Below are positions 2,495 through 63,833 of a stretch of 64,000 nucleotides of DNA, piece by piece. A program made the translations under genes and the position numbers. The notes beneath the pieces are model-generated. The model was not told the origin of the DNA. It did not search any database and was given only the letters and a program-made list of their open reading frames with translations. The first letter of the stretch is position 1. Each line of letters begins with the position of its first letter. The stretch lies in the sequence record LC727699.1; one strand, 5' to 3'.

Positions 2495-2680
2495 ATAGAG
2501 CAAGGCAGTTTGCGTAAAACGCACTGCACTTTAAGGGGGTGATCCAGTCGTAAATAAACCGGGGTACTAAAGTATCGTCAGGAACGACACGAACCCCAAC
2601 TACGGTGCCTTGCTACTCACCGACCTCTAGATAGGGGTCGGACCTATTACATTAAAGGAGCCCACCAGGGGCTCCTTTAT
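2495..2680 (+). ncRNA. Candidate structured ncRNA, about 185 nt
   Basis: GC-rich ORF-less island with a 9-bp outer stem, nested arms, a hairpin and a terminator; G-U pairs favour the + strand. Confidence 0.5.
2654..2678. terminator. Intrinsic terminator, A- and T-tailed
   Basis: AAAGGAGCCC-ACCAG-GGGCTCCTTT. Confidence 0.8.
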
Positions 2681-2689
2681 GCCATTCAT

Positions 2690-2716
2690 TATAAATTAAT
2701 TTAAATCTATATTACA
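2690..2716 (+). promoter_or_regulatory. phiKZ-type early promoter (class B)
   Basis: TTTAAATC-TATATTAC, core at 2708-2715, upstream of the first + strand gene. Confidence 0.75.
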
Positions 2717-2761
2717 GGATTACCATAAAGATATTTATCCTTTTATAATGAGGAAAAGATT

Positions 2762-3157
2762 ATGTCCGATATTAATAGCACCAATGTAACAGATGAATTA
2801 GTACCTTATTTTCCATCGGCGGATGCCATTACTAGTTCTACTATTAGGGATGAAGTAATTCCTAATATTTTGTTATTCTACAAGAATGCTTTTAGTGACT
2901 TCCAACACGTTAGTAATATCACAGGTACTAACCAGATTGCATCAGGTTATTTACCAGGTGTAGGTTATTATTTCGAGTATAGTGTTACCGGTAATGCTAA
3001 TCTTATTCCACCTGAAGCAATTAAAGTATTACGTAATGTAATCACTAAAAATGGATATAAAGATGACATTACCATCACACCAAAAGGTTTTGGCCTAATC
3101 AATTGGTTCATTGTGAGAGTATACGTAGATGAGCAAATTAAGAAGACTACTCAATAA
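2762..3157 (+). CDS. Hypothetical protein
   Basis: 131-aa ORF with GAGG RBS, first gene after an early promoter. Confidence 0.8.
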   Translation: MSDINSTNVTDELVPYFPSADAITSSTIRDEVIPNILLFYKNAFSDFQHVSNITGTNQIASGYLPGVGYYFEYSVTGNANLIPPEAIKVLRNVITKNGYKDDITITPKGFGLINWFIVRVYVDEQIKKTTQ

Positions 3158-3305
3158 AGAATTAGAAAAAGAGTTAGTTAAAAAACTAGATTTTCTAGAA
3201 CGTGATTTTAGAGCTATAAAAGAAGTTATCAAAACTGGAAAATATCCTGATCCTGTTAATCCGAATCGCAGACAAAGTGATTATGATTTATCTTTTAATA
3301 ATTAA
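3129..3305 (+). CDS. Small hypothetical protein (58 aa, below track cutoff)
   Basis: MSKLRRLLNKELEKELVKKLDFLERDFRAIKEVIKTGKYPDPVNPNRRQSDYDLSFNN fills the gap between neighbours. Confidence 0.6.
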   Translation: MSKLRRLLNKELEKELVKKLDFLERDFRAIKEVIKTGKYPDPVNPNRRQSDYDLSFNN

Positions 3306-3321
3306 CCTATAAGAGGATGCT

Positions 3322-3723
3322 ATGGAAATCACATTTCCATCTGTAAAAGAAGTAATGACAACTGATCCAGCATTTATTGATTTGGTTCTGAAAAGTAAAT
3401 TACTTACTATCCGTAAAGCAATGATTGATGTTATTCGAAATATTGAGAATACATCACTAGCATCTAGTAGGCTTGTTAAACAGAAAAGCTATCCATATCA
3501 AACTACTTTCGAACTTGTATTTAACCCAAAGGTTTTTAAATGGTTTGATAAAACAGATGCTATCAATATTAAAAATATTCTTCATGCTGAAGTAGTTAAC
3601 CAGGATTGGGAGAGTATTGATATTTCTTATAATGGTAGGGATATACATGGTTTTGAAAAAGTGACTATTGTATTAACTCCTATGAAAGATGAAGCTATTA
3701 AATATGATCTTTCAAAAGCATGA
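3322..3723 (+). CDS. Hypothetical protein
   Basis: 133-aa ORF, GAGGA RBS, followed by a terminator. Confidence 0.8.
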   Translation: MEITFPSVKEVMTTDPAFIDLVLKSKLLTIRKAMIDVIRNIENTSLASSRLVKQKSYPYQTTFELVFNPKVFKWFDKTDAINIKNILHAEVVNQDWESIDISYNGRDIHGFEKVTIVLTPMKDEAIKYDLSKA

Positions 3724-3739
3724 ATTAAGATAACATATA

Positions 3740-3768
3740 CCCTCCCCTTTATTGGGGAGGGATTATTT
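3740..3768 (+). terminator. Intrinsic terminator
   Basis: CCCTCCCC-TTTATT-GGGGAGGG with AT/T tail. Confidence 0.75.
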
Positions 3769-3965
3769 ACTTATATGTTTAATAGAATAAGGACTCTACC
3801 TTGGAATAATGCTAATGCTCTTCACCAGAGAAAAGAGATATATAGATAGACGTATTACACATTATCAGGTTGAGTAGTAAATTAAAACAACCAATAATAC
3901 GTTATTCAATATTGAAATAGTTGTTATAAAACATTTATATTAATCTAATACAGGAAATAAAGAAA

Positions 3966-4676
3966 ATGGGTGATTATGTATATTTAGAAACTCAAGCTAA
4001 AGTAAATAATGAATGGATTGGTATCGAAGATATTGAACTAACACAGAATTATGATCTTTATGCATATCTACTTGATATTCGCAATTATTGGGATGTAAAA
4101 CCATTTGCTTACCATAATGGTGTTCCTGATGATCTGAAAAAGAAACCAGAATGGTGGAGTAGTTATGATGATGATCCACGCTGTGATGCATGGATTAGTG
4201 GTGAAGCTATTCTAAAAGGTATGAGTGAGCTTAAACCAGTTACTAAAACAGTATATATGAGTCTATATACTTATATGTCCTGGGATCGTATGTCAGAACC
4301 AGATTGCTATTCACGGTATAGCCCACGTCTTGTAACAGATGAACCAAAAATTAATAAAATCTCTCAAAAACAATTACAGTATTATAAGAATTTAACTGAA
4401 AGTTTTTATTCTCTAAACCTTAAAGCTAATTATGATTGGAAGGTTATCGACGGTCGGTTACAACGAGTCGGGCCTAAATGTGGTAAGAATCACCTACGTA
4501 ATCTACGTCGAGTATCGCGTTATCTATCTTTCTGCAATGTTCCTAATGAACCTATCAAAGTAACTTATACACTCACGGCTGATCAACAGCGAAAAGAATT
4601 TAAACCTTTTATTTATCAAGTCCGAAATGCCGTTCTTAAGTACGGTGATATCCGTCTTCTAATGAGGGTTAGATAA
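3966..4676 (+). CDS. Hypothetical phage protein
   Basis: 236-aa ORF with AGGA RBS; N-terminus MGDYVYLE...NYDLYAYL. Confidence 0.8.
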   Translation: MGDYVYLETQAKVNNEWIGIEDIELTQNYDLYAYLLDIRNYWDVKPFAYHNGVPDDLKKKPEWWSSYDDDPRCDAWISGEAILKGMSELKPVTKTVYMSLYTYMSWDRMSEPDCYSRYSPRLVTDEPKINKISQKQLQYYKNLTESFYSLNLKANYDWKVIDGRLQRVGPKCGKNHLRNLRRVSRYLSFCNVPNEPIKVTYTLTADQQRKEFKPFIYQVRNAVLKYGDIRLLMRVR

Positions 4677-5329
4677 TGGCAATGACAGCTATTGTCGGTA
4701 GTCGCTATGCCCCTACATGGGCCCTAGAATTGATGATACGCGCAGGAAGAACATTTGTTGATCTAGGTATAGGTATTTCATCAGGCGATGCATATGGATC
4801 AGATAGAGCTGGTTGGTATGGTGCAATTCAGTCTGATAAATGGGATACAGTAGAAAGTCGTATTTACATTATTCGAAATGGATTTCTTGGAAGACGAATT
4901 GAGAATCTAGCGTGGTTTCATGATGCCTCCGTATATACTGATACCATTCCCACAGCTATGGCAATGGCCTGTGCAGCTCGGGGAAGTTTCAATGGTTTAG
5001 GTAGAACAGGTATTGAACTACATACTCGTAATGTATTTCAAATTCATGGCCATACTTTACGTGAACCTGTTTCAACTATTATTGCATACGGTGAACAAAA
5101 GACACCAACCTCTGTAATTAGTGGTGGTACTAATACAGCGTGGCAGTTGGCATTAGATGCAAATGTGCCAACTATGTATAACCTATACTGGTCCGATGAT
5201 GTAAAGAGACTAGAAGAATGGTTAAATAAAAATGAATCTGATGAGCCATATATGCCAATTGATTGGTCTGAAATCTTAGATCCTAGAGATAGCCGTCTAC
5301 CTGAATTGATGGATGAATATAATAATTAA
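4676..5329 (+). CDS. SLOG/DprA-like Rossmann-fold protein
   Basis: AIVGSR, SSGDAYGSD and SGGTNTA motifs resemble the SLOG/DprA(Smf) superfamily. Confidence 0.65.
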   Translation: MAMTAIVGSRYAPTWALELMIRAGRTFVDLGIGISSGDAYGSDRAGWYGAIQSDKWDTVESRIYIIRNGFLGRRIENLAWFHDASVYTDTIPTAMAMACAARGSFNGLGRTGIELHTRNVFQIHGHTLREPVSTIIAYGEQKTPTSVISGGTNTAWQLALDANVPTMYNLYWSDDVKRLEEWLNKNESDEPYMPIDWSEILDPRDSRLPELMDEYNN

Positions 5330-5362
5330 TTTTCTCAAATGAATTAGTTATAATAGCCAAAA

Positions 5363-5390
5363 TAAACCCTCCTCTTAGTAGGAGGGTTTA
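5363..5390 (+). terminator. Intrinsic terminator
   Basis: TAAACCCTCCT-CTTAGT-AGGAGGGTTTA. Confidence 0.75.
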
Positions 5391-5432
5391 TATCGTCTCA
5401 AATTAGATTATCAATTAGAAAAGGAACATCAA

Positions 5433-6533
5433 ATGAATTATCGTAATAGCAAACTTACGTTAGTCCAGCAGAAGTGGATTGATCGTTTTATCTCCATTGC
5501 TATGGAGGTTGATAATGGCCGTGCAATTTCCAATGCATATCGCTATACTCTTAATGAACAGGGAATTAGTTCAGATAGTGAAGATCTACGTATTCACTAT
5601 CCTTTTGGAGTTGATAGAAAAGAATTCATCAAAGAACAAATTTACAAACTATGTGATGAAGTTATAAGCCCTTTAAATCTGAAAGCATTCAGAATTAGTG
5701 GTGGTTTTGCATTACTAGATGATGAAGGAATCATTGGTTTCCTAATGAATGGAATAGAAGGTACCACTAGTCAGAACTTTAGATTATACTCCAATGAAGA
5801 ACTGATCAAAGTATTTAAATTACGTTTTGAAGAAGTATTTGATCAGACTCGTCCACCTAGTATTAAAAGAATTCGGGTTAACTATCAAAATAATGAACTA
5901 TATAGCTTTAGTGAAGTTATTTCTGTTCGTAACTACAATCCAAATATGATGGAAATGTATCCATTCCTAGATCGATCTCCAGCTGAAATCTGGACTGAAT
6001 TCGCTGCATCTGAATCTAATGTTCTACTATTGATTGGTCCTCCTGGTACTGGTAAGTCTAATTATATCAATGAGATTATTCGGGCTCGTGGTTATAATGA
6101 TCGTAATGTGTATCTAGCTGATCAAGATGATGTACTTGGCCACGCCGGTTTGACTAATTTTATTCGTGGTGTTGAGGATAATTCACTCATTATTACAGAA
6201 GACTCTGATAAAATGGTGGCTAAACGTGTAGATGGTAATAGTAATATGTCAGGGCTATTAAATGCTACAGCTGGTCTAGTATCTACTAAGACCAAGATTA
6301 TCATTTCTACTAATCTTCCGACTCTTCGTGATGTTGATGAAGCTTTAGTTCGACCTGGCCGTGCTTTCGATATTCTTACCTTCAAAACACTTACTGCTGA
6401 ACAAGCGAATGCAGCTCGTTTAGCTAATGGTCTAGATCCAGTTGAGTTTGTCGGTAATAATCTTACTTTAGCTGAAGCATTGAATACTAGTTCTTGCAGT
6501 AGCCCACGCAAAGCAAGTCGTGTAGGTTTCTAA
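5433..6533 (+). CDS. AAA+ ATPase
   Basis: Walker A GPPGTGKS, Walker B IITED, second region of homology STN...DEALVRPGR. Confidence 0.9.
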   Translation: MNYRNSKLTLVQQKWIDRFISIAMEVDNGRAISNAYRYTLNEQGISSDSEDLRIHYPFGVDRKEFIKEQIYKLCDEVISPLNLKAFRISGGFALLDDEGIIGFLMNGIEGTTSQNFRLYSNEELIKVFKLRFEEVFDQTRPPSIKRIRVNYQNNELYSFSEVISVRNYNPNMMEMYPFLDRSPAEIWTEFAASESNVLLLIGPPGTGKSNYINEIIRARGYNDRNVYLADQDDVLGHAGLTNFIRGVEDNSLIITEDSDKMVAKRVDGNSNMSGLLNATAGLVSTKTKIIISTNLPTLRDVDEALVRPGRAFDILTFKTLTAEQANAARLANGLDPVEFVGNNLTLAEALNTSSCSSPRKASRVGF

Positions 6534-6640
6534 GGAAAAGTAAGCTGCTTTTAAACTAGCGAAGAAACATGAATTCCAACGTGTTATTTATAATCCTGAT
6601 GACCTTAAAGTAAAGCATTATTTCACATACGGAGATCAGC

Positions 6641-7243
6641 ATGCAGCGCAATAATGACCCGCAGCAAGTAATCATGTCGATTGAGATGTACAATAGCCTA
6701 CTGGCTATGGCTAATGATTCACCTCATTACACGACAAAACTTATCCAACGTCACGTGCGAAAGATGAATCCTTTTTTACAACCTGCACATCTAAAGAATG
6801 TCAGAACTAAGGAAGCTATTCGGTCCCAACGTATTCGTGAAGCTCGGGCTTTCTTCGAAGCCAATCATAGAAAAATTCTGTACGCAAAGGTTGATATGGG
6901 TAACTGTAAAAAAGGAGATGATCCGGTTTACTTCCCATGCATATCTGAACGTATTGCCAAGAATAGACAACTAATCCAAGTTCGTCATGCCAATGAAGTT
7001 GGTTATGGACGGTGCATCCGGTTGGTAGAGGCTAAATATCTCACAACCATTATTCCTGATGGATATATCCAAGGAACTGGGCCGTATAAAAAATATCTTG
7101 TTAAAGAGAATGGTCCTTACGATATCCGTGAACAAGAAGAAAAACGTAAACAAGCTTTTTCGAGTGAGATAGCTAAGAAGTTTGAGTTCAAACATGATTC
7201 TTACGATATGGATAATCTCAAAAAGAATTATTATACACAATGA
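6641..7243 (+). CDS. Hypothetical protein, paralogue of 31606..31989
   Basis: 200-aa ORF with GGAG RBS; N-terminal similarity to 31606. Confidence 0.75.
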   Translation: MQRNNDPQQVIMSIEMYNSLLAMANDSPHYTTKLIQRHVRKMNPFLQPAHLKNVRTKEAIRSQRIREARAFFEANHRKILYAKVDMGNCKKGDDPVYFPCISERIAKNRQLIQVRHANEVGYGRCIRLVEAKYLTTIIPDGYIQGTGPYKKYLVKENGPYDIREQEEKRKQAFSSEIAKKFEFKHDSYDMDNLKKNYYTQ

Positions 7244-7334
7244 GATTAGTATAAATGGACATTAGTTTATCTCCAGTATGAGTATTCCAACTTCTTAAAT
7301 ATTACTAAAGAGCAGACTATGAATATATCAGTGT

Positions 7335-7703
7335 TTGCTCTTTGGAGGTAATTACTCTGGAGCATCTAATATGTGTGCAATTCCTGTAATACCTGTATCA
7401 AATGACATCACTGTTATTAAGCCAGGTGATACAGTTTGGTCAACAGGTGTTCTCGGTATGAAAGCATCCTGTGAGCATCCACCAGCGCTATTCTGTATAC
7501 GGGGTGATGAACTTGAAGTTCTAGAAATTAGCCCTCCCACGGAATATGAGAAAAAAGCAATGTATAAGTGCCGCTTAAAAAGAGGCACTGGTCATTTCTG
7601 GATCTATCGTAGTGGGTTTACTAAAATAAAGCCATTTAATCACAATATGACTGGTTATGAGTTTTGGGATGGTGAGAAAATTAGAGAATATGGTGGGCAT
7701 TAG
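7335..7703 (+). CDS. Hypothetical protein, possible SH3/KOW-like beta domain (start uncertain)
   Basis: IKPGDTV...RGDELEVLEI pattern shared with 40831, 41142 and 43217. Confidence 0.6.
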   Translation: MLFGGNYSGASNMCAIPVIPVSNDITVIKPGDTVWSTGVLGMKASCEHPPALFCIRGDELEVLEISPPTEYEKKAMYKCRLKRGTGHFWIYRSGFTKIKPFNHNMTGYEFWDGEKIREYGGH

Positions 7704-7714
7704 AGTAAAAGAAA

Positions 7715-7840
7715 ATGGCTAGCGAAAATAATAAATCAGACATGCAACATGAACAAGAAGAACCACCCATATTCAAAATGCTTTTTCTAAGTGCAGTTAT
7801 AGGTGGATCATTATGGGAAATAATTAGACAGTGGTTTTAG
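7715..7840 (+). CDS. Small membrane protein (41 aa)
   Basis: MASENNKSDMQHEQEEPPIFKMLFLSAVIGGSLWEIIRQWF; ends within a terminator hairpin. Confidence 0.55.
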   Translation: MASENNKSDMQHEQEEPPIFKMLFLSAVIGGSLWEIIRQWF

Positions 7841-7852
7841 CCACTGTCTTTA
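7826..7852 (+). terminator. Intrinsic terminator
   Basis: AGACAGTGG-TTTTAG-CCACTGTCT followed by T residues. Confidence 0.6.
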
Positions 7853-7874
7853 TAATGTATTTTGAGTTATAAAA

Positions 7875-8039
7875 ATGTCCATAGAAAAAGCCTATTCCAA
7901 TTTAATAGCTTCAATTAAAACAGTTAGAAAACATTTTCCTAAATTAATTCAAGAGAAGAATTTAGATGAGGAATTACGACGGGAGTTTACGACTCCTATT
8001 CAATTCGACCCGACTAAGAAATCGGGAAACTCCTTTTGA
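7875..8039 (+). CDS. Small hypothetical protein (54 aa), possibly frameshift-linked to the next ORF
   Basis: MSIEKAYSNLIASIKTVRKHFPKLIQEKNLDEELRREFTTPIQFDPTKKSGNSF, ending TCC TTT TGA. Confidence 0.5.
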   Translation: MSIEKAYSNLIASIKTVRKHFPKLIQEKNLDEELRREFTTPIQFDPTKKSGNSF

Positions 8040-8223
8040 TAACGAACAGTCAGAAATGGATAAGTTAAAACCAATCGATGACTTTTGGAAAACTAAAACA
8101 ATTAAACCATCAGATGCTTATTTAGAAAGAAAGAATGAGCAACTAAAGATGATTAATCCGCATAAAGTTTATAATCCATTCAATGAAAAAGATACGGTAT
8201 TAAAACCTATTTCTAAATTATAA
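7966..8223 (+). CDS. Hypothetical protein (start uncertain)
   Basis: ORF track; weak RBS; overlaps 7875..8039 in the +1 frame. Confidence 0.5.
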   Translation: MRNYDGSLRLLFNSTRLRNRETPFDNEQSEMDKLKPIDDFWKTKTIKPSDAYLERKNEQLKMINPHKVYNPFNEKDTVLKPISKL

Positions 8224-8235
8224 AAAGGATTTACT

Positions 8236-8655
8236 ATGAAACAAGATCATCAATTCTGGCATGATAAACCATTTTCAGAAAATGAAGTTAGGAAGAAACT
8301 TGGCGGATCGTCATTATCCAAACTAAGTACAGAACAGATTTTAGAAGAGTGGCGAACAGAACATATTGAACGTAATACTCCTTTAAGTAAAAGGCTATAT
8401 GACATTCGTAATAAAGCCATCAATGATTACTCACTTACTGATAATCAACAAGTTAATAATTTGTTGCAATGTGCAGTGGATCAAGTCTTAGCAGATGTGA
8501 TCATTATGTTAGATGGTTCAGTGCCACATAAGCAATTTCAAATTTCTGAATATGAAATTGAAATGGACAGTAAGGAATTATCGATTAAAGAACATACTCG
8601 TCCAATAACTGAAGATCTACTAAAAAATTATTTTGAATTGGTGAATGGCAAATGA
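8236..8655 (+). CDS. Hypothetical protein
   Basis: 139 aa, AAGGA RBS, overlaps the next start. Confidence 0.8.
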   Translation: MKQDHQFWHDKPFSENEVRKKLGGSSLSKLSTEQILEEWRTEHIERNTPLSKRLYDIRNKAINDYSLTDNQQVNNLLQCAVDQVLADVIIMLDGSVPHKQFQISEYEIEMDSKELSIKEHTRPITEDLLKNYFELVNGK

Positions 8656-8996
8656 CTGAACGTATTCATTACTCAGATCGTAAGTTACCGCTGTGTTTTA
8701 AAGGTGTTTATGACATTCCAGTTGTAACCATCGAAAACTATTGTAAGTGGTATGGTCTTAATATTGTCTATCCAGATGGGCGTGTTGAATGGGTTGACAC
8801 TGATTTACTTGCTGAAATAGAACGGGAAAGCAAGTTCGCAGTAATGGGTGATCACAACTATCATCCAATTCTGCTGGACAAAGTAGCTGAGAAGATTGGC
8901 GGGGCGGCATGTGATGTTGCACGTGAGTTGATGACTGGCCGTTGGGTACTAGAGGTTATGGACGGTGAAATCCCTGGTCAAGAAAAATTCTGTTAA
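8652..8996 (+). CDS. Hypothetical protein
   Basis: 114 aa, ATGA-coupled to the previous stop. Confidence 0.8.
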   Translation: MTERIHYSDRKLPLCFKGVYDIPVVTIENYCKWYGLNIVYPDGRVEWVDTDLLAEIERESKFAVMGDHNYHPILLDKVAEKIGGAACDVARELMTGRWVLEVMDGEIPGQEKFC

Positions 8997-11892: not shown

Positions 11893-13026
11893 ATGATTAT
11901 GTTTAAGTACTTAAAAAATGTTATTGATATTTTTAACAAACCAAAAAAGGTAGATACATTAGAACAAAAGATAGCTAATCTAAATGATAAATACATCAGA
12001 GAAAATGTAGATGTTGATCAAATTGATATTCTGTCAGGTTATTTCACAGGAATGCTATCTGGGAAATTACATGATCGAAGTTTAGTATGGGGTTATTATA
12101 CCAAAGAAACTAAGACATGGATGATTTATTTTGTTGAACAAAATTTTGATTCATTCATGTATAAAGTAACTAATAATTCATTAGATATTATTAATCTAAC
12201 TGATATAGAAGATCTTAAATTATTCTATTTCTCTAATGAACAATACATACCTGTAAATACACCAATCAATAGTGATCTAAATGTGGCTGTAATTTTCACA
12301 TCAAAACCACTCACTAAGGATTTCATTGATCCATCTTTAATAGATCAAGTTAAATCAGTTAATAGTAATTACAAGATTGTGATGGGTGGGTTATCTAATA
12401 ATTCCAAATTTGATAGTAACCCAATAACTCTAATTGTAGAGTCTTATGAAGCAGATGGTGATATCGTCGTAGTTGAACTAACTAATGGTACAACTGTGGC
12501 CATCAATAGAAAACTACTTAATATGTTTATGTATCAGTCAAGAATAGTTGATACATGTAATAACTCAAAAGTGCTTATAGATTTCAATGGACGGCTAAAG
12601 TTCACACCTATGGAGAATCATTTAGGTGGTATAAATAGTGCAATGCATTATTGGTCAAGTAATGGAATTATCAAAATTAGGTGTGACTATAGTATCATAT
12701 TAGATCTAGATAAGTTTCCAGAGATTGCTAATCATATTGGAAACTGGATACATATTGAAGCTAAGACAATTGCAAAAGTAATTGACTCGGTTGTGGTACC
12801 ATACTTAACAAATGGGGAGCTTAGTACGCTCATTGTTGATTTAGATAATATCGATATTCAGTATCGTGGTTTAACATTATCTGGTAATATCAGCTTGCGT
12901 GATCGTTTAGATAAATGCAAAATCAAACTGATAAATCCATCAACTGATCCATATGAGATACCTAGTCTAAATGGTAAACGTGATGTCCATGGTTTTTATA
13001 GAGTAGATGGAAGTTTATTAAAATGA
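11893..13026 (+). CDS. Hypothetical protein (377 aa)
   Basis: Long AT-rich ORF with AAGGT RBS; no motif recognised. Confidence 0.85.
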   Translation: MIMFKYLKNVIDIFNKPKKVDTLEQKIANLNDKYIRENVDVDQIDILSGYFTGMLSGKLHDRSLVWGYYTKETKTWMIYFVEQNFDSFMYKVTNNSLDIINLTDIEDLKLFYFSNEQYIPVNTPINSDLNVAVIFTSKPLTKDFIDPSLIDQVKSVNSNYKIVMGGLSNNSKFDSNPITLIVESYEADGDIVVVELTNGTTVAINRKLLNMFMYQSRIVDTCNNSKVLIDFNGRLKFTPMENHLGGINSAMHYWSSNGIIKIRCDYSIILDLDKFPEIANHIGNWIHIEAKTIAKVIDSVVVPYLTNGELSTLIVDLDNIDIQYRGLTLSGNISLRDRLDKCKIKLINPSTDPYEIPSLNGKRDVHGFYRVDGSLLK

Positions 13027-13493: not shown

Positions 13494-13595
13494 ATACAAT
13501 ACTATGTAGTAGTATTTCTATTACGTACCTTTCGAGGCATATACTCCATGACTTATGTTGTGGGGTATATGTGTTATAATGTTTAAGAGGTTAAA

Positions 13596-20820: not shown

Positions 20821-20884
20821 TAAAAATACTTCTTATAGACTAATAATATAGGTAAGATACTAGCCGATTGGTTAGTTGCGCTTA

Positions 20885-20904
20885 GGGAGTCCTTCGGGAC
20901 TCCC
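20885..20904 (+). terminator. UUCG hairpin (weak U-tract; terminator or stabiliser)
   Basis: GGGAGTCC-TTCG-GGACTCCC. Confidence 0.5.
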
Positions 20905-20925
20905 GTATATCGTCTAGGAGGTTTT

Positions 20926-52026: not shown

Positions 52027-52680
52027 ATGGCGTCAATCATTAGTCTACCTTTTATCAAACTAGTAATCAGCCGTAATAATAATTACACTGTTAACCATCA
52101 GTCAGGTGCTGATAATGTACCTCATCTATGTGTTAAAGTAAAACATTCTAACGGTTATGCCTGGTTCGGTATTATCATTGTTGATTATGAAAAACGTACC
52201 AGTGGTTGGACTGAAGAAGAATTCAATGCAGTTGTAACTCGTTTCCATGAAGCAATGAATTCTCAATGTGATATCCAACGATTAGAAACAGACATTAACC
52301 GACTAATGGATTCCATCCAAGATGTTGTTACTGGTCGGAAACGACCAACCCTATTCGGCGGTGATAGTAATGACTTCATTCAAATGCATCTTCAAAATAA
52401 TATCCAACTTGATATTTATCGGAATGAAATTAACGAAGATACTCTAACCTATGGTGGGTATCGTGGTAAAGTAAGTCTTCGCCATGGTTATGATGAATAC
52501 AGCTTCTTCCTGTATCATCGTGGTATTATTCTAAACCATTACATCGATGCAGAGATTGCTAAAGAGCTAATTGAAGATGCTCTTAATAAGACTTTCCCGG
52601 AGATTACTTATCTACCGCGAGCCACTGTCGAACCTACAGCAGTGGAACGCACTCGTAATAGACATCTGGATAAAAGTTAA
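52027..52680 (+). CDS. Hypothetical protein
   Basis: 217 aa, AAGGA RBS. Confidence 0.85.
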   Translation: MASIISLPFIKLVISRNNNYTVNHQSGADNVPHLCVKVKHSNGYAWFGIIIVDYEKRTSGWTEEEFNAVVTRFHEAMNSQCDIQRLETDINRLMDSIQDVVTGRKRPTLFGGDSNDFIQMHLQNNIQLDIYRNEINEDTLTYGGYRGKVSLRHGYDEYSFFLYHRGIILNHYIDAEIAKELIEDALNKTFPEITYLPRATVEPTAVERTRNRHLDKS

Positions 52681-53095: not shown

Positions 53096-53188
53096 AAAAT
53101 AGTAAAAGAAATACACTATTCTATGTAGTTCCTTTACGATTGCTCTTTTATCTTAGTTTCAGTTTTGCTGAAGAAGTACCAATGAGAT

Positions 53189-53215
53189 ACCCTCCCCTGA
53201 TCGGGGAGGGTTTTT
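53189..53215 (+). terminator. Intrinsic terminator
   Basis: ACCCTCCCC-TGATC-GGGGAGGGT followed by TTTT. Confidence 0.85.
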
Positions 53216-53622: not shown

Positions 53623-53747
53623 TATGTAAAGAATACCCAAATCGGGATCTCCCGGACTATCTCCCTTCAGCGTTCCCGTCCGCAAATGAAGGTGCCGCCG
53701 AGATCCCACCTATTGATAATGCCCTCCCTTCGGGGAGGGCATTATTT
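53623..53747 (+). ncRNA. Candidate pseudoknotted RNA or attenuator leader
   Basis: TATG start, 8-bp P1 enclosing an H-type pseudoknot, then a UUCG terminator. Confidence 0.5.
53717..53747 (+). terminator. Intrinsic terminator
   Basis: TAATGCCCTCCC-TTCG-GGGAGGGCATTA followed by TTT. Confidence 0.85.
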
Positions 53748-57345: not shown

Positions 57346-57399
57346 ACTTGATATTACTAAAAGTAATATTTTCTATTAATTGTAAATAGGAAACTAAAT

Positions 57400-57537: not shown

Positions 57538-57545
57538 GATAACAT

Positions 57546-57572: not shown

Positions 57573-57594
57573 TATATTTATTTTTTTATTTGTT

Positions 57595-58224
57595 TTAACT
57601 TGGGGTACTATAATAAATAAATTTAGTTAATTCATCTTGTTGTTCTTTGATTATATTATTTTTCGTTTGTTTAACATTAATGTAATATTCAATAAATAAC
57701 CAACGTCTATCATGTTTGGCTAAGTCTTTGAATTCAATTTTCTCAAATCGCCATGACTGTACAGTAGTCCTAATGAGATTACCGGATTTATTGATAATGT
57801 ACCCTTGCATGGCGTTAATGTGATCATCGATAGTAGATGTTGGTAAAAATATCAAATAAACACCATCTGTATTTTTAGTGTGCATACTTTTTAATTTATA
57901 CATCATTGGGTTAAAGTATTCATCACTTTTATGATAATCGCTTAATTCTAACACAGCATCAATCATCATTTTAGCGCTTTCAGTAACACCAACATTTAGT
58001 AAATAATCATTAAGCTCTTTTAATGAATTATCTGTAAGTGATGCATCTATGTGTTCTTCACTTATAGGTTCATTATAAACTAGTTTATTAATAGTTGAAT
58101 TAACAATATTTAGCCTATCGATATCATAAACTGCTAGTGTTTGTTTACCAACATTTATTTTTAAGTCTTTACCTGATTCATTGATAAAATCATTTAAATC
58201 TACTTCAGTAAAATGAAAAGCCAT
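57595..58224 (-). CDS. Hypothetical protein
   Basis: 209 aa, AAGGTG RBS. Confidence 0.85.
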   Translation of the reverse strand: MAFHFTEVDLNDFINESGKDLKINVGKQTLAVYDIDRLNIVNSTINKLVYNEPISEEHIDASLTDNSLKELNDYLLNVGVTESAKMMIDAVLELSDYHKSDEYFNPMMYKLKSMHTKNTDGVYLIFLPTSTIDDHINAMQGYIINKSGNLIRTTVQSWRFEKIEFKDLAKHDRRWLFIEYYINVKQTKNNIIKEQQDELTKFIYYSTPS

Positions 58225-58383
58225 TTTTATACACCTTTATGTTTTCCGTAGTGTTAAATTTTATTAACACCCGGTTTCAAGTTGAGTTATGTGTAGAACT
58301 AATCTACAAATAATATTAACTCTATGTATAATTTTACTTATAAATAGACCACTCTATATAGAGGGGTATTAAGTCATATAAAG

Positions 58384-58479
58384 TTATTTTAGTGTGGGTC
58401 TAAATACAAACATTACGTCTACTTCATCAGTTGGGTCGACATCATATTCTGTCCCAGTATTATCAATCGCAACCAACAT
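58384..58479 (-). CDS. Possible acidic microprotein (31 aa)
   Basis: MLVAIDNTGTEYDVDPTDEVDVMFVFRPTLK; GAGGA upstream. Confidence 0.4.
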   Translation of the reverse strand: MLVAIDNTGTEYDVDPTDEVDVMFVFRPTLK

Positions 58480-58695
58480 TCTCACATTCCTCGGTAAAGG
58501 GCTTTATGTGATTTAGATAGGCGAGTGATAAAATACCTAAATGCACTGAGATATTCTCTGATAAATCCTTTACCTTTATTAAAATTATCACCTACATGGA
58601 CCATTCAATCACTTTTATGTAGCTTGATTTCAATCAATTAAAGGGTATAACGAATGTAATGTATTTATACACGAATATAGTTATCATAAGCTCAA

Positions 58696-58986
58696 CTACT
58701 TGGGGTAAAAGAGTGGACGGAGATCAGTCTCATGGTATTCATCTTTGATATGGGAAAAGTACTTATTGAAATTATCCACACTATACGAAGTTCTAAGCCC
58801 ATTTGGCCAAATCACTAACATGTCACCAACTTCGAATGCCGTGATCATAGCCTCAAAGTCTTTTATGTTTACATGATCATTACCAAGTTTCACGAATCGA
58901 CATGCACGGAAACCACATTCCCAGTCAGACGACATCCATTGACCAGCTTCAGTAATCAGCTTTGCACGAACTAATGTCTTAGCCAT
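58696..58986 (-). CDS. Hypothetical protein
   Basis: 96 aa, overlaps the upstream stop. Confidence 0.8.
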   Translation of the reverse strand: MAKTLVRAKLITEAGQWMSSDWECGFRACRFVKLGNDHVNIKDFEAMITAFEVGDMLVIWPNGLRTSYSVDNFNKYFSHIKDEYHETDLRPLFYPK

Positions 58987-59164
58987 ACTTGGTACCCCAG
59001 TTTATCGTTTTGTCGAGAAGAGCTTGACTAGGTCGTTTATTACGAATCTGATTCTTAATAGACTCATTTAGCTCTTCCATCGTTTTCCGAACTTTAACTA
59101 ATCGTTCCTTTTGTTCATTTGTAGGAACACTACTAACTATATCTTGCAATGCTTTAAGTGACAT
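58979..59164 (-). CDS. Hypothetical protein
   Basis: 61 aa, AGGGT RBS. Confidence 0.7.
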   Translation of the reverse strand: MSLKALQDIVSSVPTNEQKERLVKVRKTMEELNESIKNQIRNKRPSQALLDKTINWGTKYG

Positions 59165-59226
59165 GTCTTTACCCTATTTGTATTCAGCTATAAGATTCAA
59201 CTACTGGGTACTTTTACAAGACGACA

Positions 59227-59250
59227 TAAAGGCAGCATTAGCTGCCTTTA
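59227..59250. terminator. Terminator after tRNA-Asn copy 1
   Basis: TAAAGGCAGC-ATTA-GCTGCCTTTA. Confidence 0.7.
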
Positions 59251-59295
59251 TAGTTTACATAGTAGTGAAATATAACTAAATCTAAAACTATGAAT

Positions 59296-59371
<76 letters not shown>

Positions 59372-59532
59372 AGAATTATGGCGATTTTATATTAGAGATG
59401 AGTTACTGACAACCTAATATAGATATGTAATAACTACATATTATTACAATCTGAGTATTATTTATTTCTTGTTATGACATTATGTAAATAACGTGTAGTT
59501 AATCTTATTAGAAACTATCAAAGTTACTAATT

Positions 59533-60045
59533 CTAACTAAAACGAACCACCATTACCTCTGTACCAAAAGTATCTGCAACCCACTGGTTAAATTCTTTAT
59601 CAGTGATACCGCGTAGGTTCAGATTAAATGAGGCATTGTCAACAAGAATATATTTTACAGACGATATTAATTCTTCTTTAATATCTTTTTGAATAGATGA
59701 TTCCTCAGGTTGATGAATATATTTACGGAGTTGGTGTGTAATTAAACAAGAAACAATATTATCTTTAGCATTCTGGAACTTAGCCAGTACAGCCTGTTTA
59801 ATTTTATCTTCTACAAATACAGCTAGACATTCGCCAGGATGACGATTAGCAAACTCAATCAATGCAGTTGTACTACCACATTGCCGACCTACAAATAATC
59901 CAACAGTCCTGTATTCACGAATAACAATATGACCAATAGAATTAGATCGATAATTAACCCAGTTCTCATTCGTTTTTTGAATTAAAGCATCTAGGATATC
60001 TTGGTACTTTACAATAGTTCTTACAAACTGATTAGAGTTAGTCAT
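59533..60045 (-). CDS. Hypothetical protein with degenerate P-loop
   Basis: GLFVGRQCGSTTALI resembles RQxGKT with Lys replaced by Ser; AAGGAG RBS. Confidence 0.75.
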   Translation of the reverse strand: MTNSNQFVRTIVKYQDILDALIQKTNENWVNYRSNSIGHIVIREYRTVGLFVGRQCGSTTALIEFANRHPGECLAVFVEDKIKQAVLAKFQNAKDNIVSCLITHQLRKYIHQPEESSIQKDIKEELISSVKYILVDNASFNLNLRGITDKEFNQWVADTFGTEVMVVRFS

Positions 60046-60169
60046 AATAGACTCCTTTATTACAATGTAGCATAGATTCAGTTTTTTAACTGGAATTAAA
60101 TGCCGATTTTGAAAAGGTGATAAAACCTTTTCTCATCTATAAATGAATTTATAATAGTAACAATGAATA

Positions 60170-60280
60170 TAACCAGGGGTGGCAAACCCCTGGCATTTAG
60201 ACACACTCTATAATAAGTTCTACCACCGAGTGTGTTTAGTGGATAGATTTAAGAATACTTTATTATAGTACTCTTACATA
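60170..60280 (-). ncRNA. Candidate three-hairpin sRNA, about 110 nt
   Basis: TATG at 60280, two stems, then the CCAGGGGT/ACCCCTGG terminator; no ORF. Confidence 0.4.
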
Positions 60281-60329
60281 ATATCATCGTGCCAGTATAA
60301 TTATCTAAATAGTTATAAATATTATTATT

Positions 60330-61337
60330 TTAATCAATGATTAATGGTGCTAGTTTTACCTGATAGATACCTGATAACAATTGGCTTTTCAACATATATG
60401 CTCCACCACCAACTGGCATTTTAGATCCACCTACAATGATCATGCTATTATCCGGACCTTTAGCTATAGATGAAATATTAAGGAATCCGATACCTAGTTC
60501 AAATGGTTCAGCCCATTTCCGGCGCCTAATATTAAAACGTTGTGCAAACATTTTAGTTACACCGCCGACATCAACAGCGTTAAGGTAATTAAAATAGTCC
60601 CCATCTACATAACCATTACCTTGCCAGATTGTTCCTTTATCAGCAGGTATAATCATCCAAGGTGTTTGCTCCCATATTAAGGTAGTTGCATTATATCGAT
60701 AAACTTCAAGATTAGGTATGTTCTTTGTATTATCCCAACCACCAAAATGGTAAAAGTAACCATTATAAAAGAATAACTGTTGACCTGAACGAGCACCACC
60801 TGAATAGTCTTGCCCGCTAAGCCAAGACTTACTTGATGGTTTTAATCGCATTGCGTTTACGCCAATTGGGTTAACGCATAGAATAAGATCATTACCATCT
60901 GATGCGGAGGCTGTGCCCCAAAGTGGTACGGGACCACTATATCGCTCAACCCTATTGCCTGTAGCTATATCAAAATGTTGTATAAAGTTAGATGTTCCCG
61001 TACCACCATTACCAGCCGAGTTCCATCCAGTAATACCACCATAAACAATAAAGTTATTCTTATGTAATGTCCCAAATCCTAAAGATACCCCTGGTAAGAA
61101 TGTTCCAGAAGCAGTTGCACCTATATCGGCAAATGGCGATATGGTAAAACGTCTGAACACAGTTGCAGCTGTTTGTCCTTCAGTATGATGACCAGATCCA
61201 ACATACAGTGTATTTCCATCCACATATGACATTGTACCAGCTAACGCTACAGGTAGATCACCTAATTTAATAATTTCATTAAATCCAACCAAGGGTAACT
61301 CTTCGCCTATATCTGGTGATAATAGTAATTCAAACAT
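60330..61337 (-). CDS. Kelch-repeat beta-propeller protein
   Basis: Repeats such as LHKNNFIVYGG, FYNGYFYHFGG.....VYRYN....W and DNSMIIVGG. Confidence 0.75.
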   Translation of the reverse strand: MFELLLSPDIGEELPLVGFNEIIKLGDLPVALAGTMSYVDGNTLYVGSGHHTEGQTAATVFRRFTISPFADIGATASGTFLPGVSLGFGTLHKNNFIVYGGITGWNSAGNGGTGTSNFIQHFDIATGNRVERYSGPVPLWGTASASDGNDLILCVNPIGVNAMRLKPSSKSWLSGQDYSGGARSGQQLFFYNGYFYHFGGWDNTKNIPNLEVYRYNATTLIWEQTPWMIIPADKGTIWQGNGYVDGDYFNYLNAVDVGGVTKMFAQRFNIRRRKWAEPFELGIGFLNISSIAKGPDNSMIIVGGSKMPVGGGAYMLKSQLLSGIYQVKLAPLIID

Positions 61338-61391
61338 GAGTGTGCTCTCAAGTAAATCATTTTAATTCATAAGATAACCCATGGCAACATA

Positions 61392-61415
61392 AAAGAGTAG
61401 CCGAAGCTACTCTTT
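61392..61415 (-). terminator. Terminator after the Asp-Asn tRNA pair
   Basis: AAAGAGTAGC-TTCG-GCTACTCTTT on the - strand. Confidence 0.85.
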
Positions 61416-61421
61416 AGAATA

Positions 61422-61497
<76 letters not shown>

Positions 61498-61503
61498 ATT
61501 AAA

Positions 61504-61580
61504 TGGCGCGCCCAAGGGGACTCGAACCCCTGACCACCCGCGTGACAGGCGGGTATTCTAACCAACTGAACTATGAGCGC
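61504..61580 (-). tRNA. tRNA-Asp(GUC)
   Basis: GCGCTCATAGTTCAG...CCCGC-CTGTCAC-GCGGG...GGTTCGAGTCC...GCGCGCCA. Confidence 0.95.
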
Positions 61581-61603
61581 AAACGTATGGACATGACTTC
61601 CTA

Positions 61604-61617
61604 CATAGTATTACATA
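61604..61617 (-). promoter_or_regulatory. Late-type TATG start (tandem, 10 nt apart) for the tRNA Asp-Asn unit
   Basis: TATGTAATACTATGTAG; similar TATG contexts at 57267, 59440, 60280, 63139 and 63833 (-) and at 13503, 22982, 53122 and 53623 (+); a 4-nt motif is weak evidence alone. Confidence 0.45.
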
Positions 61618-61632
61618 ACCAGTAATATTTTA

Positions 61633-61980
61633 TTACGGGCGATCAGTCCAGTGCTTGAAATAGTTACCATCCTTGGGACGATCGTACTTAGCAAGAATAT
61701 TTTTAAGTTCTTCGCCGGACAACTTAATACTATCGCCTACTGGGCTATCCAGTTCAGGGAAAGGTTCAGTTTTACGTGTAATGATTAAATTATCAGTCCC
61801 ATCTTTGAAGATAAAGATAAACTGCGTTTCATTAGCACTAATCTTTTTCTTAACGCAATGCTTTACTTCTGGATGTTTCTTGTGGATCGCTACAAAAGAT
61901 TCAACAAGAGTTAGCTTTATAAACTCAGGGCTAATAAATGTGAAATATACAGCGCTCTGCGTTGGGGTTAGATGATCCAT
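61633..61980 (-). CDS. Hypothetical protein
   Basis: 115 aa, GGAG RBS. Confidence 0.8.
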   Translation of the reverse strand: MDHLTPTQSAVYFTFISPEFIKLTLVESFVAIHKKHPEVKHCVKKKISANETQFIFIFKDGTDNLIITRKTEPFPELDSPVGDSIKLSGEELKNILAKYDRPKDGNYFKHWTDRP

Positions 61981-61982
61981 AT

Positions 61983-62270
61983 TTACTCCGTATGTTTGAG
62001 ATAGGCTTTAACTGCTTTAAGACCTTTATTAAAGAACATAGCTTCAACATAAGTAATGTTACTTACATCCTCGCCGATAAGTTCCCATTTGATGCAACGT
62101 GTAACAGCGTTGATTGTAATATCTAATCCGTTTGGGAATAGGGTTACTTCATCGGTCAGGTGAATCCAATCGGGAACCTTCGCTCCATTACGTAAACGGG
62201 GACTAAAAGTAAGATTATAAAGTGTTTGTAATGGTTGTCTCAATAGTTCTTTTTGTTCTTGATGTTCCAT
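61983..62270 (-). CDS. Hypothetical protein (start re-called from 62288)
   Basis: AGGA RBS before MEHQEQK. Confidence 0.75.
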   Translation of the reverse strand: MEHQEQKELLRQPLQTLYNLTFSPRLRNGAKVPDWIHLTDEVTLFPNGLDITINAVTRCIKWELIGEDVSNITYVEAMFFNKGLKAVKAYLKHTE

Positions 62271-62278
62271 GTATTTTC

Positions 62279-62500
62279 CTAGAGACATTTAAAAATATAA
62301 ATAGAATGGTTATCTCTTTCGGTTATCTTTAGAGTATTCTCATTTCGAATAACTTCAAGAGACTTGTATTTATGTTCCAGAATATCCAGATGAGAAATAC
62401 ACTGTTCCCTATTTTCAAATAGGATATTACTTTCATTAGTCGAAATGAAACCAAATAATCCAACTTTGATAGATAATACCAACATTATTACTGTATTCAT
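62279..62500 (-). CDS. Small exported or membrane two-Cys protein (start re-called from 62536)
   Basis: GAGGA RBS before MNTVIMLVLSI; FENREQC...IFKCL like 19847..20104. Confidence 0.7.
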   Translation of the reverse strand: MNTVIMLVLSIKVGLFGFISTNESNILFENREQCISHLDILEHKYKSLEVIRNENTLKITERDNHSIYIFKCL

Positions 62501-62526
62501 GTTTTCCTCAATGAGACAGTATAAAA

Positions 62527-62544
62527 CCTCCCCCAAGTGGGAGG
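62527..62544 (-). terminator. Terminator after the CAU tRNA
   Basis: CCTCCC/GGGAGG stem with TTTTAT tail on the - strand. Confidence 0.7.
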
Positions 62545-62552
62545 CTAGTATA

Positions 62553-62629
62553 TGGTGGGCCCAGCAGGACTTGAACCTGCGACCAAGCGATTATGAGTCG
62601 CCTGCTCTAACCAACTGAGCTATAGGCCC
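62553..62629 (-). tRNA. tRNA with CAU anticodon, most likely tRNA-Ile2 (lysidine, reads AUA)
   Basis: Anticodon arm GGCGACTCATAATCGCTTGGTCGC matches E. coli ileX as recalled; C4-G69 and C5-G68 TilS determinants; no initiator features. Confidence 0.9.
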
Positions 62630-62636
62630 TTTTTAT

Positions 62637-62930
62637 TTATTCTGGTAAGAATGTTCCATCTTTTTCACGGACTAATACACCTGACCATTTGAATGTATTT
62701 GTATCACTAACAGGGCACTCTCTAATTACATTGGTTCTAAATGTGCCATGTGGATAGGTTACAGTGAATGTAATATGATTATTACAAACATGCAATACAG
62801 AAGACTTTGCTTCTGTTAGATAGTGTAAGCCTTGAGCTAATTGAATATTAGTTAATTCAGGGTCACTAATAATAGCGTAAAGAGCTGTTCCTATAATTTG
62901 ATGTTCCCATGATATCCATTTATTATCCAT
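62637..62930 (-). CDS. Hypothetical protein
   Basis: 97 aa, lies between tRNAs. Confidence 0.75.
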   Translation of the reverse strand: MDNKWISWEHQIIGTALYAIISDPELTNIQLAQGLHYLTEAKSSVLHVCNNHITFTVTYPHGTFRTNVIRECPVSDTNTFKWSGVLVREKDGTFLPE

Positions 62931-62951
62931 CCTATTTACCTATTATTAAAA

Positions 62952-63027
62952 TGGTCGGAGTGGGGAGACTCGAACTCCCGACATCCTGCTCCCAAAGCAG
63001 GTGCGCTACCAACTGCGCTACACTCCG
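62952..63027 (-). tRNA. tRNA-Pro(UGG)
   Basis: CGGAGTGTAGCGCAG...CCTGC-TTTGGGA-GCAGG...GTTCGAGT...CTCCGACCA. Confidence 0.95.
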
Positions 63028-63036
63028 TATTTAAAT

Positions 63037-63121
63037 TGGTGCCCGAAGTCGGATTCGAACCGACAAGACCGTAGCCGGAAGATTTTAAGTCTTCTGTGTT
63101 TACCAATTTCACCATTCGGGC
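63037..63121 (-). tRNA. tRNA-Leu(UAA)
   Basis: 85 nt with long variable arm; GAAGA-CTTAAAA-TCTTC; ends GGGCACCA. Confidence 0.95.
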
Positions 63122-63179
63122 ATTGTGCTTCAATACATAACATGTAATACTAGGTATTTTATTACAACTTATTTTAAAT

Positions 63180-63632
63180 TCAACGTGGCCATTGTAAAGA
63201 AGTTATCTTATTACCATTAATGTAGACATCGGTCACTTCGCACCAATCATTAATTCTGTGCTCAATAATTGGCACATCATTTCGGCCAGCCACTCCAATC
63301 ATATTCCATTTAACATAAATATTCATTAGATCAATTGTTAATTTCTCTTTTATGAGTTTAGGAGAAATTAATTTAATATTATTAATGTTAAAGAAGTAAT
63401 TATTAACTTCTTCTAAATATTCATTAGTATTAGTAGTACTAACTTTACCTTCATGTTCAAGTGAAGATGGTTTATTTTGATTTACAATATTATTCACTAG
63501 ACTTCTTAAAACGGCGCTTGCCCTACCAGCTTCACGTCTTTTATATTTATCATAGTCTTTTACATTAGCTGCAATTTTATCAAATTCTTTTTGGGCATAG
63601 ATTAACCCTGGTAAAAGTTCATTCTTAATCAT
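63180..63632 (-). CDS. Hypothetical protein
   Basis: 150-aa ORF; no motif recognised. Confidence 0.75.
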   Translation of the reverse strand: MIKNELLPGLIYAQKEFDKIAANVKDYDKYKRREAGRASAVLRSLVNNIVNQNKPSSLEHEGKVSTTNTNEYLEEVNNYFFNINNIKLISPKLIKEKLTIDLMNIYVKWNMIGVAGRNDVPIIEHRINDWCEVTDVYINGNKITSLQWPR

Positions 63633-63689
63633 TTTATAATTACTCTATGTTATTTGTACATATTTTAACATACTCACGTAAAAACAAAA

Positions 63690-63833
63690 TATAAAGCCTC
63701 CCCGAAGGGAGGCGATATATCGTCATTAATGCCCAGCAAAGAGTTTTACTCTCTGGGAGCCAGTTGGAAGGGGGACTGGCTCCGATTTATTATGACTAAT
63801 GTAGAAACGAGGGGGAGGGATCATTTCTACATA
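63690..63833 (-). ncRNA. Candidate sRNA with two C-rich (anti-SD-like) loops, about 145 nt
   Basis: TATG start, two perfect 9-bp stems with C-rich loops, a third stem and a UUCG terminator with T tail. Confidence 0.6.

Follow-up and report, generated by a model that had tools for sequence, protein, structure and literature searches.

6S RNA is an abundant structured RNA that imitates an open promoter and sequesters RNA polymerase. To our knowledge, only ribosome-binding proteins have been described so far as factors in the takeover of host translation by phage phiKZ. In this study, we analyzed a 64-kb stretch of sequence record LC727699.1 (64,000 nucleotides [nt]; referred to at its full length as the window), which belongs to a phiKZ-type Pseudomonas jumbo phage and shares 100% identity with Pseudomonas phage sp. 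LC and approximately 99% with phiKZ. An original prediction had flagged five units without open reading frames (ORFs), at positions 2495, 53122, 53623, 60280, and 63833, as an undescribed repertoire of late phage RNAs. One of the five, the unit at 2495 (2495 RNA), has good support as a family of structured RNAs and shows a striking, testable match to 16S rRNA. Its closest precedent is provided by rreB and rreR, small mRNAs of alphaproteobacteria. These are approximately 165 nt long and perfectly complement the 3' end of 16S rRNA over 16 to 17 nt (Hahn et al. 2016, RNA Biol, PMC5711450). They cosediment with the 30S subunit, to which binding was shown experimentally, and their single-stranded part was proposed to serve as a seed (PMC5711450). 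The rre RNAs are cellular and contain a conserved small ORF (sORF) of 14 to 18 amino acids (aa), the GUG start codon of which closes the complementary stretch (PMC5711450). Another described RNA, OLE, mimics in its P6 region a duplex between Shine-Dalgarno (SD) and anti-SD sequences, which is bound by the ribosomal protein bS21 (PMC12054373).

Similarly to rreB and rreR, the 2495 RNA harbors a long perfect complement of the 16S 3' end. Unlike them, it is encoded by a virus, lacks a start codon and a conserved ORF, presents its motif in a junction of a covarying fold, and contains a second block for helix 45. It is not a member of the rre group because the defining sORF is missing. No start codon was found at the 7-nt spacing of the GUG in rreB, where members of the family have GUC, GCC, or UAA, and no conserved reading frame followed the motif; the downstream frames stop after 1 to 13 codons at differing places. 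By analogy, the 2495 RNA may bind the small subunit in the same way as rreB. It is also structured and noncoding and carries an SD look-alike, as does OLE RNA, which connects to the translation machinery. However, in OLE RNA both strands form an internal duplex of 6 bp and the binding partner is a protein, whereas the 2495 RNA offers a 14- to 21-nt SD-side strand without a conserved internal partner. The analogy with 6S RNA would be functional only: the 2495 RNA would imitate the initiation region of an mRNA, the machine would be the 30S subunit, and sequestration is proposed. The two RNAs are not related in sequence or structure, and an Rfam search of window positions 2380 to 2780 with E ≤ 10 gave no E value below 3.7. 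Binding to 30S is known for cellular rreB-type RNAs with matches of this kind, and a phage RNA that is conserved and matches the mRNA-selecting site of 16S rRNA perfectly and strongly would, if true, represent a new type of host takeover factor.

The unit from 2494 to 2681 is a stand-alone conserved noncoding RNA gene and not a leader. It occupies 188 nt of the plus strand, counted from the start motif through the terminator, its predicted fold has a free energy of -71.4 kcal/mol (z = -4.98), and no plus-strand ORF of at least 20 aa was found in it. The promoter region (2472 to 2498, plus strand) consists of AAAAATAC (2472 to 2479), a 14-nt spacer, and TATAG (2494 to 2498). Its sequence has the elements of the phiKZ middle-class motif (ATAC, a spacer of ~14 nt, and TATG[T]) and is a predicted promoter on that basis, with a start that differs from the consensus in the last two positions (TATAG, not TATGT). 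The pattern TAC-N10-AT-NN-TATAG was invariant across seven lineages, and aaaTAC-N14-TATAG was present in all 17 members compared. The next gene, a PHIKZ204 homologue, has its own early promoter, TATATTAC (2708 to 2715), and therefore the 2495 unit is not a leader of it. This early-promoter motif (2704 to 2716, plus strand, AAATCTATATTAC) lies just past the terminator and stands at the same place in most family members. On the other side, the divergent helicase gene PHIKZ203 has the late promoter P107, with a start at 2452 on the minus strand (supplement of Putzeys et al. 2024). The RNA gene therefore sits between a late promoter on the minus strand and an early promoter.

Toward the 3' end, the P4 hairpin (2620 to 2641, plus strand) is found at this place in every member, its sequence differing each time. 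It is followed by the putative terminator hairpin with UUUAUG (2657 to 2681, plus strand); the hairpin and the subsequent (C)UUUAUG are conserved in the family, and the stems covary. In the window, the hairpin at 2657 to 2675 precedes UUUAU. This U-tract is short, a consensus terminator scan, which needs at least five T residues, made no call, and the mapped 3' end lies upstream. That end, the published plus-strand 3' end T095, is located at phiKZ position 213001, corresponding to window position 2645 (window base 1 is phiKZ 210357). It lies 4 nt past the P4 hairpin, and the mature 2495 RNA likely ends near 2645. The supplement neither classes T095 as intrinsic nor assigns it to a transcription unit, and it lists only two features for phiKZ 212,8xx to 213,0xx, P107 (minus) and T095 (plus) (Putzeys et al. 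2024). The noncoding RNAs (ncRNAs) of phiKZ described by Putzeys et al. and Gerovac et al. differ from the 2495 unit in this respect: only its 3' end has been recorded, without a start or a transcription unit, and it lies outside the ncRNA definition of Putzeys et al. (2024), which comprises, in front of a gene, a mapped start and a terminator fewer than 250 nt downstream of this start. RNA runs matched to this region gave Logan contigs only. One such contig covers positions 2486 to 2637; contigs of this kind cannot show ends, strand, or level. The RNA is assigned to the plus strand because of the G.U pairs of its helices, the upstream motif, the downstream U-tract, and the mapped 3' end. As a side observation, the inner stem and loop of the terminator hairpin are inverted in phage vB_PaM_W10-2 (GGAGCCCCUGGUGGGCUCC versus GGAGCCCACCAGGGGCUCC at window positions 2657 to 2675), and the hairpin is kept.

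The core of the 2495 RNA was modeled as a three-way junction composed of a closing stem (P1), a hairpin (P2), and a P3 domain with a GNRA-capped hairpin, followed by the further hairpin and the terminator. Minimum-energy folds of individual members and ribosum-scored RNAalifold agreed on P1, P2, P3, and the junction strands J2/3 and J3/1. All elements are given on the plus strand. The 5' strand of the long closing stem P1 (2497 to 2507) resembles 16S CAAGGUAG, and helix 1 was 88.5% paired. P1 joins the extreme 5' end to the sequence after CCUUG; it closes the minimum-energy folds of 12 out of 12 members, and its outer part covaries, with a sequence that differs per lineage. The P2 hairpin (2508 to 2526; helix 2, 96.2% paired) displays compensatory change in three pairs. 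J2/3 (2532 to 2552), an invariant strand that we refer to as block A or the "super Shine-Dalgarno," has no conserved internal partner and is complementary to 16S positions ~1522 to 1542. The P3 domain (2561 to 2597) consists of an outer helix, GGGGU/ACCCC, and an inner hairpin (2575 to 2587) with mostly GNRA loops. In helices 3 and 4 of this domain, 11 of the 12 pairs were compensatory, and six or more different P3 sequences occur. Block B (2594 to 2613), comprising J3/1 (ACUACGG) and the 3' strand of P1, is conserved and complementary to 16S positions ~1500 to 1518. A first RNAalifold run had paired the motif with the 3' CCUUG; this solution was rejected, the outer part of P1 covarying with the 5' end and ribosum-scored RNAalifold recovering P1.

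It counts against the fold that the 19-sequence alignment was fitted to the model and contains related sequences, so that the following figures lean toward structure: standard pairs occupied 90.7% of cells compared with 29 to 46% for slid partners, changes on both sides were seen in 16 of 25 pairs, and the covariation score was 0.435 compared with 0.185 in shuffles, being reached by none of 500 shuffles. Regardless of this bias, there is little doubt that the 2495 RNA has a conserved secondary structure because of the effect size and the number of different P3 sequences.

The J2/3 sequence AGG-R-GGUGAUCCA was identical in all 19 sequences and represents the complement of the 16S rRNA 3' end, which was verified on a Pseudomonas putida locus (the Rfam small-subunit model ends at ...CUGCGGCUGGAUCACCUCCUUA). 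The contiguous pairing run with 16S rRNA amounts to 21 nt in the present phage, starting from the 3'-terminal base. In every member, a run of 14 to 21 nt begins at or 1 nt from the terminal 16S base; complementarity of at least 16 nt, as in the rre RNAs, was found in 16 of the 17 lineages compared (17 to 21 nt), with Phabio having 14 nt. The next best run against the 16S tail on both strands of the 64-kb window was 12 to 13 nt. Substitutions inside the run were limited to exchanges between A and G at two positions that face a U in 16S rRNA, and pairing is kept in each case. The target of block A consists of the anti-SD tail and the 3' strand of helix 45. For the 14-nt single-stranded 16S tail, the predicted net binding energy was -16 to -20 kcal/mol after subtraction of an opening cost of 4 to 8 kcal/mol. 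By estimate, this is far above an ordinary SD contact. No second target with extended complementarity to the J2/3 strand was found in the nearest whole phage genome.

Block B formed a predicted duplex of -14 to -25 kcal/mol with 16S positions ~1500 to 1518 and outperformed shuffled sequences in all distinct segments tested (z = -1.4 to -4.4); this match is less secure than that of block A. On the reverse-complemented 16S end, blocks A and B are colinear, with the P3 domain at the position of the helix 45 loop. In its sequence, the gene resembles an antisense version of the final ~43 nt of 16S rRNA that carries an inserted domain. Such likeness may reflect an origin from captured host rRNA-encoding DNA (rDNA), selection for bipartite pairing, or both.

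A sensitive blastn search with positions 2470 to 2700 yielded partial matches located between genes in PA1C-type phages, PhiPA3, 201phi2-1, Viktualia, and Phabio, and walking outward from these matches added D6 and HPP-Temi. The SNF2-type helicase beside the RNA has only 51 to 58% protein identity among these phages, and the conserved intergenic DNA therefore stands out. A covariance model built from ten sequences detected the locus as the single match in the window (R1, 118 bits, E = 1.7e-25) and one copy per genome in phiKZ-like phages, 201phi2-1, Phabio, D6, and Psa21. At least nine further copies were found in viral and metagenomic contigs. Among the matches listed from a loose DNA pattern and from a metagenome scan, the model confirmed only 9 of 88 and 0 of 42 loci. 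Every copy is intergenic, usually adjoining the SNF2-type helicase gene. The family thus extends over seven lineages of Pseudomonas-infecting Chimalliviridae and their metagenomic relatives, with at least 19 distinct sequences. Using strict filters, with which weak relatives may be missed, the covariance model gave no member in 11 distant Chimalliviridae: Xanthomonas RTH11, Ralstonia RP12, three Erwinia phages, Klebsiella KpLz-2_45, Vibrio Yong XC32, Escherichia coli Goslar, Aeromonas D3, and Pseudomonas OBP and EL.

Roughly 50 GenBank records of phiKZ-type phages carry no annotation at this locus, and the RNA does not figure among the 17 phiKZ candidates that Putzeys et al. (2024) list in Table S7. 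No mention of it was found in the papers on differential RNA sequencing (dRNA-seq), Grad-seq, antisense oligomers, transposons, and 201phi2-1 or in full-text searches. The 201phi2-1 study reports three intergenic small RNAs (sRNAs), one of which could be the homologue located at 229016 to 229200. The 2495 RNA is therefore new as far as the literature and records were searched, and it could have been detected previously in 201phi2-1.

Four of the flagged units are published leader RNAs, and we consider it somewhat probable that all five are transcripts of the phage non-virion RNA polymerase and that a strand of the 2495 RNA pairs with the 16S 3' tail. In the mechanism that we propose, the J2/3 strand would act as a toehold that pairs with the 16S tail of host 30S subunits or late pre-30S particles, and the RNA would occupy the site used by mRNAs for initiation. 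Block B could then extend pairing into helix 45 by displacing the 16S-like P1 strand of the RNA itself. The net effect would be control or sequestration of a small-subunit pool during the middle phase of infection; possible consequences are that subunits are sequestered, host mRNAs excluded, the tail protected, or late maturation blocked. We more tentatively suggest, as a proposal that is itself doubtful, a dedicated antisense RNA of nucleus-forming Pseudomonas jumbo phages directed against the 3'-terminal ~43 nt of host 16S rRNA, which docks by its toehold, invades helix 45 by exchange of P1, and leaves a pool of host subunits reprogrammed, parked, or disabled or their maturation blocked. If true, this would make it the first RNA of a virus for which a direct action on rRNA is known; the literature searched did not describe any RNA encoded by a virus and complementary to the 16S 3' end.

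Several observations weigh against 16S pairing by an expressed 2495 RNA. Neither ONT-cappable-seq (based on Oxford Nanopore Technologies sequencing) nor dRNA-seq called a transcription start at the unit, and published Grad-seq did not flag the RNA. The evidence for expression consists solely of one published 3' end and of contigs that are blind to ends and strand. Phage genes in the window have ordinary SD sites, and wholesale blocking of the anti-SD sequence would therefore hurt the phage too. Pairing beyond about 14 nt would need melting of helix 45 in the assembled subunit. The 16S tail is the same in all known hosts and offers no variation with which the RNA could covary. Overexpression of rreB had no growth effect in Bradyrhizobium (Hahn et al. 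2016, PMC5711450). Finally, the predicted accessibility of the J2/3 strand was only about 0.5. This value also favors an account, in our view rather unlikely, in which the gene descends from a captured antisense rDNA fragment and does not pair with 16S rRNA in vivo, its strand being read by a protein (e.g., bS21, S1, IF3, or a phage RNA-binding protein) or acting in another way. Descent alone could explain the colinearity with the reverse complement of the 16S end, and OLE RNA demonstrates that look-alikes of SD/anti-SD sequences can serve as a bS21 site. However, descent alone leaves unexplained why 12 to 13 nt are absolutely invariant when every helix has changed its sequence and why the sole substitutions are those that keep 16S pairing.

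The extent of the complementarity bears on whether the target could be a precursor of 16S rRNA, with helix 45 formation and 3'-end maturation being blocked and production of new host ribosomes being shut off. Helix 45 is folded in the assembled 30S subunit and unfolded in late assembly intermediates, and blocks A and B match both of its strands, as such a target would predict. However, the complementarity ends exactly at the mature 3'-terminal base without extension into the spacer, and we regard this reading as quite unlikely. The resemblance to rreB, with its ~165 nt, 17-nt complement to the 16S end, and 30S binding, suggests yet another possibility, namely, a small mRNA of the rreB/rreR type, in which an extended SD sequence drives and throttles translation of a tiny peptide. 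With no ATG, GTG, or TTG at the right spacing (GUC, GCC, or UAA instead), no conserved peptide, no plus-strand ORF of 20 aa or longer, and a covarying helix in the region past the motif, this is very improbable. The least credible proposal is that the opposite strand is functional as a mimic of the 16S 3' end (helix 45 and anti-SD) that soaks up SD sequences or 16S-binding factors. The reverse complement does read like the 16S end, but the G.U pairs of the covarying helices would turn into A.C mismatches on that strand, the promoter motif, terminator U-tract, and mapped 3' end all belong to the plus strand, and P107, the nearest minus-strand start, lies downstream of the element on that strand. 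Pairing of the plus-strand 2495 RNA with the 16S tail is the reading that we carry forward.

The four other flagged starts (53122, 53623, 60280, and 63833) each correspond to the T of TATG, 4 nt ahead of a published phiKZ transcription start. These starts, phiKZ 262671, 263172, 270595, and 274148, are window positions 53126, 53627, 60276, and 63829, respectively. Putzeys et al. (2024, microLife; bioRxiv supplement Table S7) list 17 ncRNA candidates of phiKZ and report a 10-aa ORF screen of them. Start, end, and strand of all four units coincide with entries of Table S7, and each unit has the mapped start, nearby terminator, and downstream gene of the ncRNA definition given above. They are the small RNAs 5'UTR_PHIKZ288 (53126 to 53215, plus strand, 89 nt; 262671 to 262760 in Table S7; z = -2.56), 5'UTR_PHIKZ289 (53627 to 53747, plus strand, 120 nt; 263172 to 263292 in Table S7; z = -6.41), 5'UTR_PHIKZ297 (60166 to 60276, minus strand, 110 nt; z = -6.07), and 5'UTR_PHIKZ302 (63688 to 63829, minus strand, 141 nt; z = -6.43). 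The third is identical to the RNA that appears as 3'UTR_PHIKZ298 in the Grad-seq work by Gerovac et al. (2021), and the third and fourth were confirmed by Northern blotting (Fig. 6B of Putzeys et al. for 5'UTR_PHIKZ302). All four fold better than shuffled sequence, and their 3' boundary is a G+C-rich hairpin followed by a U-tract. The ORF check around these units used a threshold of at least 40 aa. At least two more published units are present in the window beyond the five flagged ones, 5'UTR_PHIKZ221 (13507 to 13576, plus strand, ~69 nt) and 5'UTR_PHIKZ234 (20850 to 20908, plus strand, ~58 nt); the starts of their Table S7 sequences were found at 13507 and 20850, and their ends are inferred from the published lengths. 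The PHIKZ263 leader was not located in the window by the start of its Table S7 sequence.

Transcription of the leader RNAs from their TATG-type promoters halts at the hairpin terminator ahead of PHIKZ288, PHIKZ289, PHIKZ297, and PHIKZ302. Putzeys et al. (2024) read them as premature-termination products that share their 5' ends with longer read-through mRNAs, which holds for all four. This reading and the predicted pairing of the 2495 RNA with the four leaders (including 5'UTR_PHIKZ302), which was no better than with shuffled sequence, favor the view that the leaders are by-products of conditional or leaky termination that tunes downstream genes in cis, with no function in trans and no translation-directed repertoire. 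On the other hand, the leaders are sufficiently stable and abundant to be seen on Northern blots, one sediments as a free species of ~100 nt, and sequence conservation at the genus level was reported for them (Putzeys et al. 2024). On balance, the cis by-product view is quite possible without being the one that we would call probable. Two C-rich hairpin loops of the 5'UTR_PHIKZ302 RNA, UCCCUCCCCCUC and UCCCCCUUCC, resemble motifs of the anti-SD type. C-rich loops of sRNAs can pair with ribosome-binding sites.

Comparison with published transcript coordinates identified the four leaders in full and, for the 2495 unit, the plus-strand 3' end only. All five units were present with the proposed layout at the predicted places and folded well (z = -2.6, -6.4, -6.1, and -6.4 for the leaders and -5.0 for 2495), and their interpretation as structured, ORF-less, terminator-bounded transcripts of the phage's own polymerase is supported. 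A start context common to the tRNA genes was also borne out: ATAC-N(~14)-TATG(T) is shared by the tRNA promoters P137, P140, and P141 and the ncRNA promoters P130 and P138, with AAATAC-N14-TATAG at the 2495 unit. The label "late" given to this context was mistaken, since the motif is that of published middle promoters (P130, P132, P137, P138, P140, and P141). For the starts of the leaders, it applies to P144 only; P129 is early, and P130 and P138 are middle (Putzeys et al. 2024). The seven tRNA genes of the window (ARAGORN and Rfam) are all located on the minus strand between 57 and 63 kb, and three of the four firmly flagged units (2495, 53623, 60280, and 63833) fall in the tRNA region. At gathering score, Rfam matched these seven tRNAs and no further RNA family in the whole window.

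The finding as originally worded, an undescribed late repertoire, was mostly already known. The four leaders had been described in Table S7, and "undescribed" holds for 2495 as far as searched. A single repertoire of one kind did not emerge, the four leaders being products of premature termination and 2495 a separate gene. The suggested role in translational takeover found no direct support for the leaders, whereas the 14- to 21-nt 16S complementarity gives it a testable basis for 2495 only. For the four leaders, the outcome is a useful negative one, in that these RNAs have been published before and belong to mixed promoter classes.

Minor observations concern possible relatives of the 2495 RNA and the window itself. 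An 11-mer scan of the 11 distant genomes gave a few matches; the match in Goslar was intergenic, and one of two in Aeromonas D3 lay inside a gene. The Goslar match is located in a 213-nt ORF-less spacer (NC_048170.1, 87200 to 87412, minus strand) with GUAGGAGGUGAUCC, a 12-nt match to the 16S tail. This spacer folds with z = -4.4 and ends in a hairpin and GGCUUUAUGCCGU, similarly to the Pseudomonas family; it was not matched by the 2495 covariance model and has no relatives for comparison. A hairpin-rich element starting with AAGGUGGUGAUCCAG was found beside tRNA-like sequence in viral contigs of 84 kb (12241 to 12331, minus strand) and 50 kb (4462 to 4551, minus strand). Its two variants differ by a few bases and are not matched by the covariance model; the element may be another RNA with a 16S-tail-like complement. 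Within PHIKZ203, position 2390 is T in the window and G in the contigs of three of the four RNA runs (X1, X3, and X13), probably a strain difference. The offset to phiKZ, 210319 near PHIKZ298 to PHIKZ302, shifts by 774 nt between window positions 52500 and 60330. Between PHIKZ295.1 and tRNA-Asn, PHIKZ296 has no counterpart here (window ~59165 to 59295 versus phiKZ 268710 to 269556), and an HNH endonuclease gene occupies this region in some relatives. Between 6000 and 52500, the offset also shifts, by 811 nt in the opposite direction, corresponding to extra DNA in the present phage.

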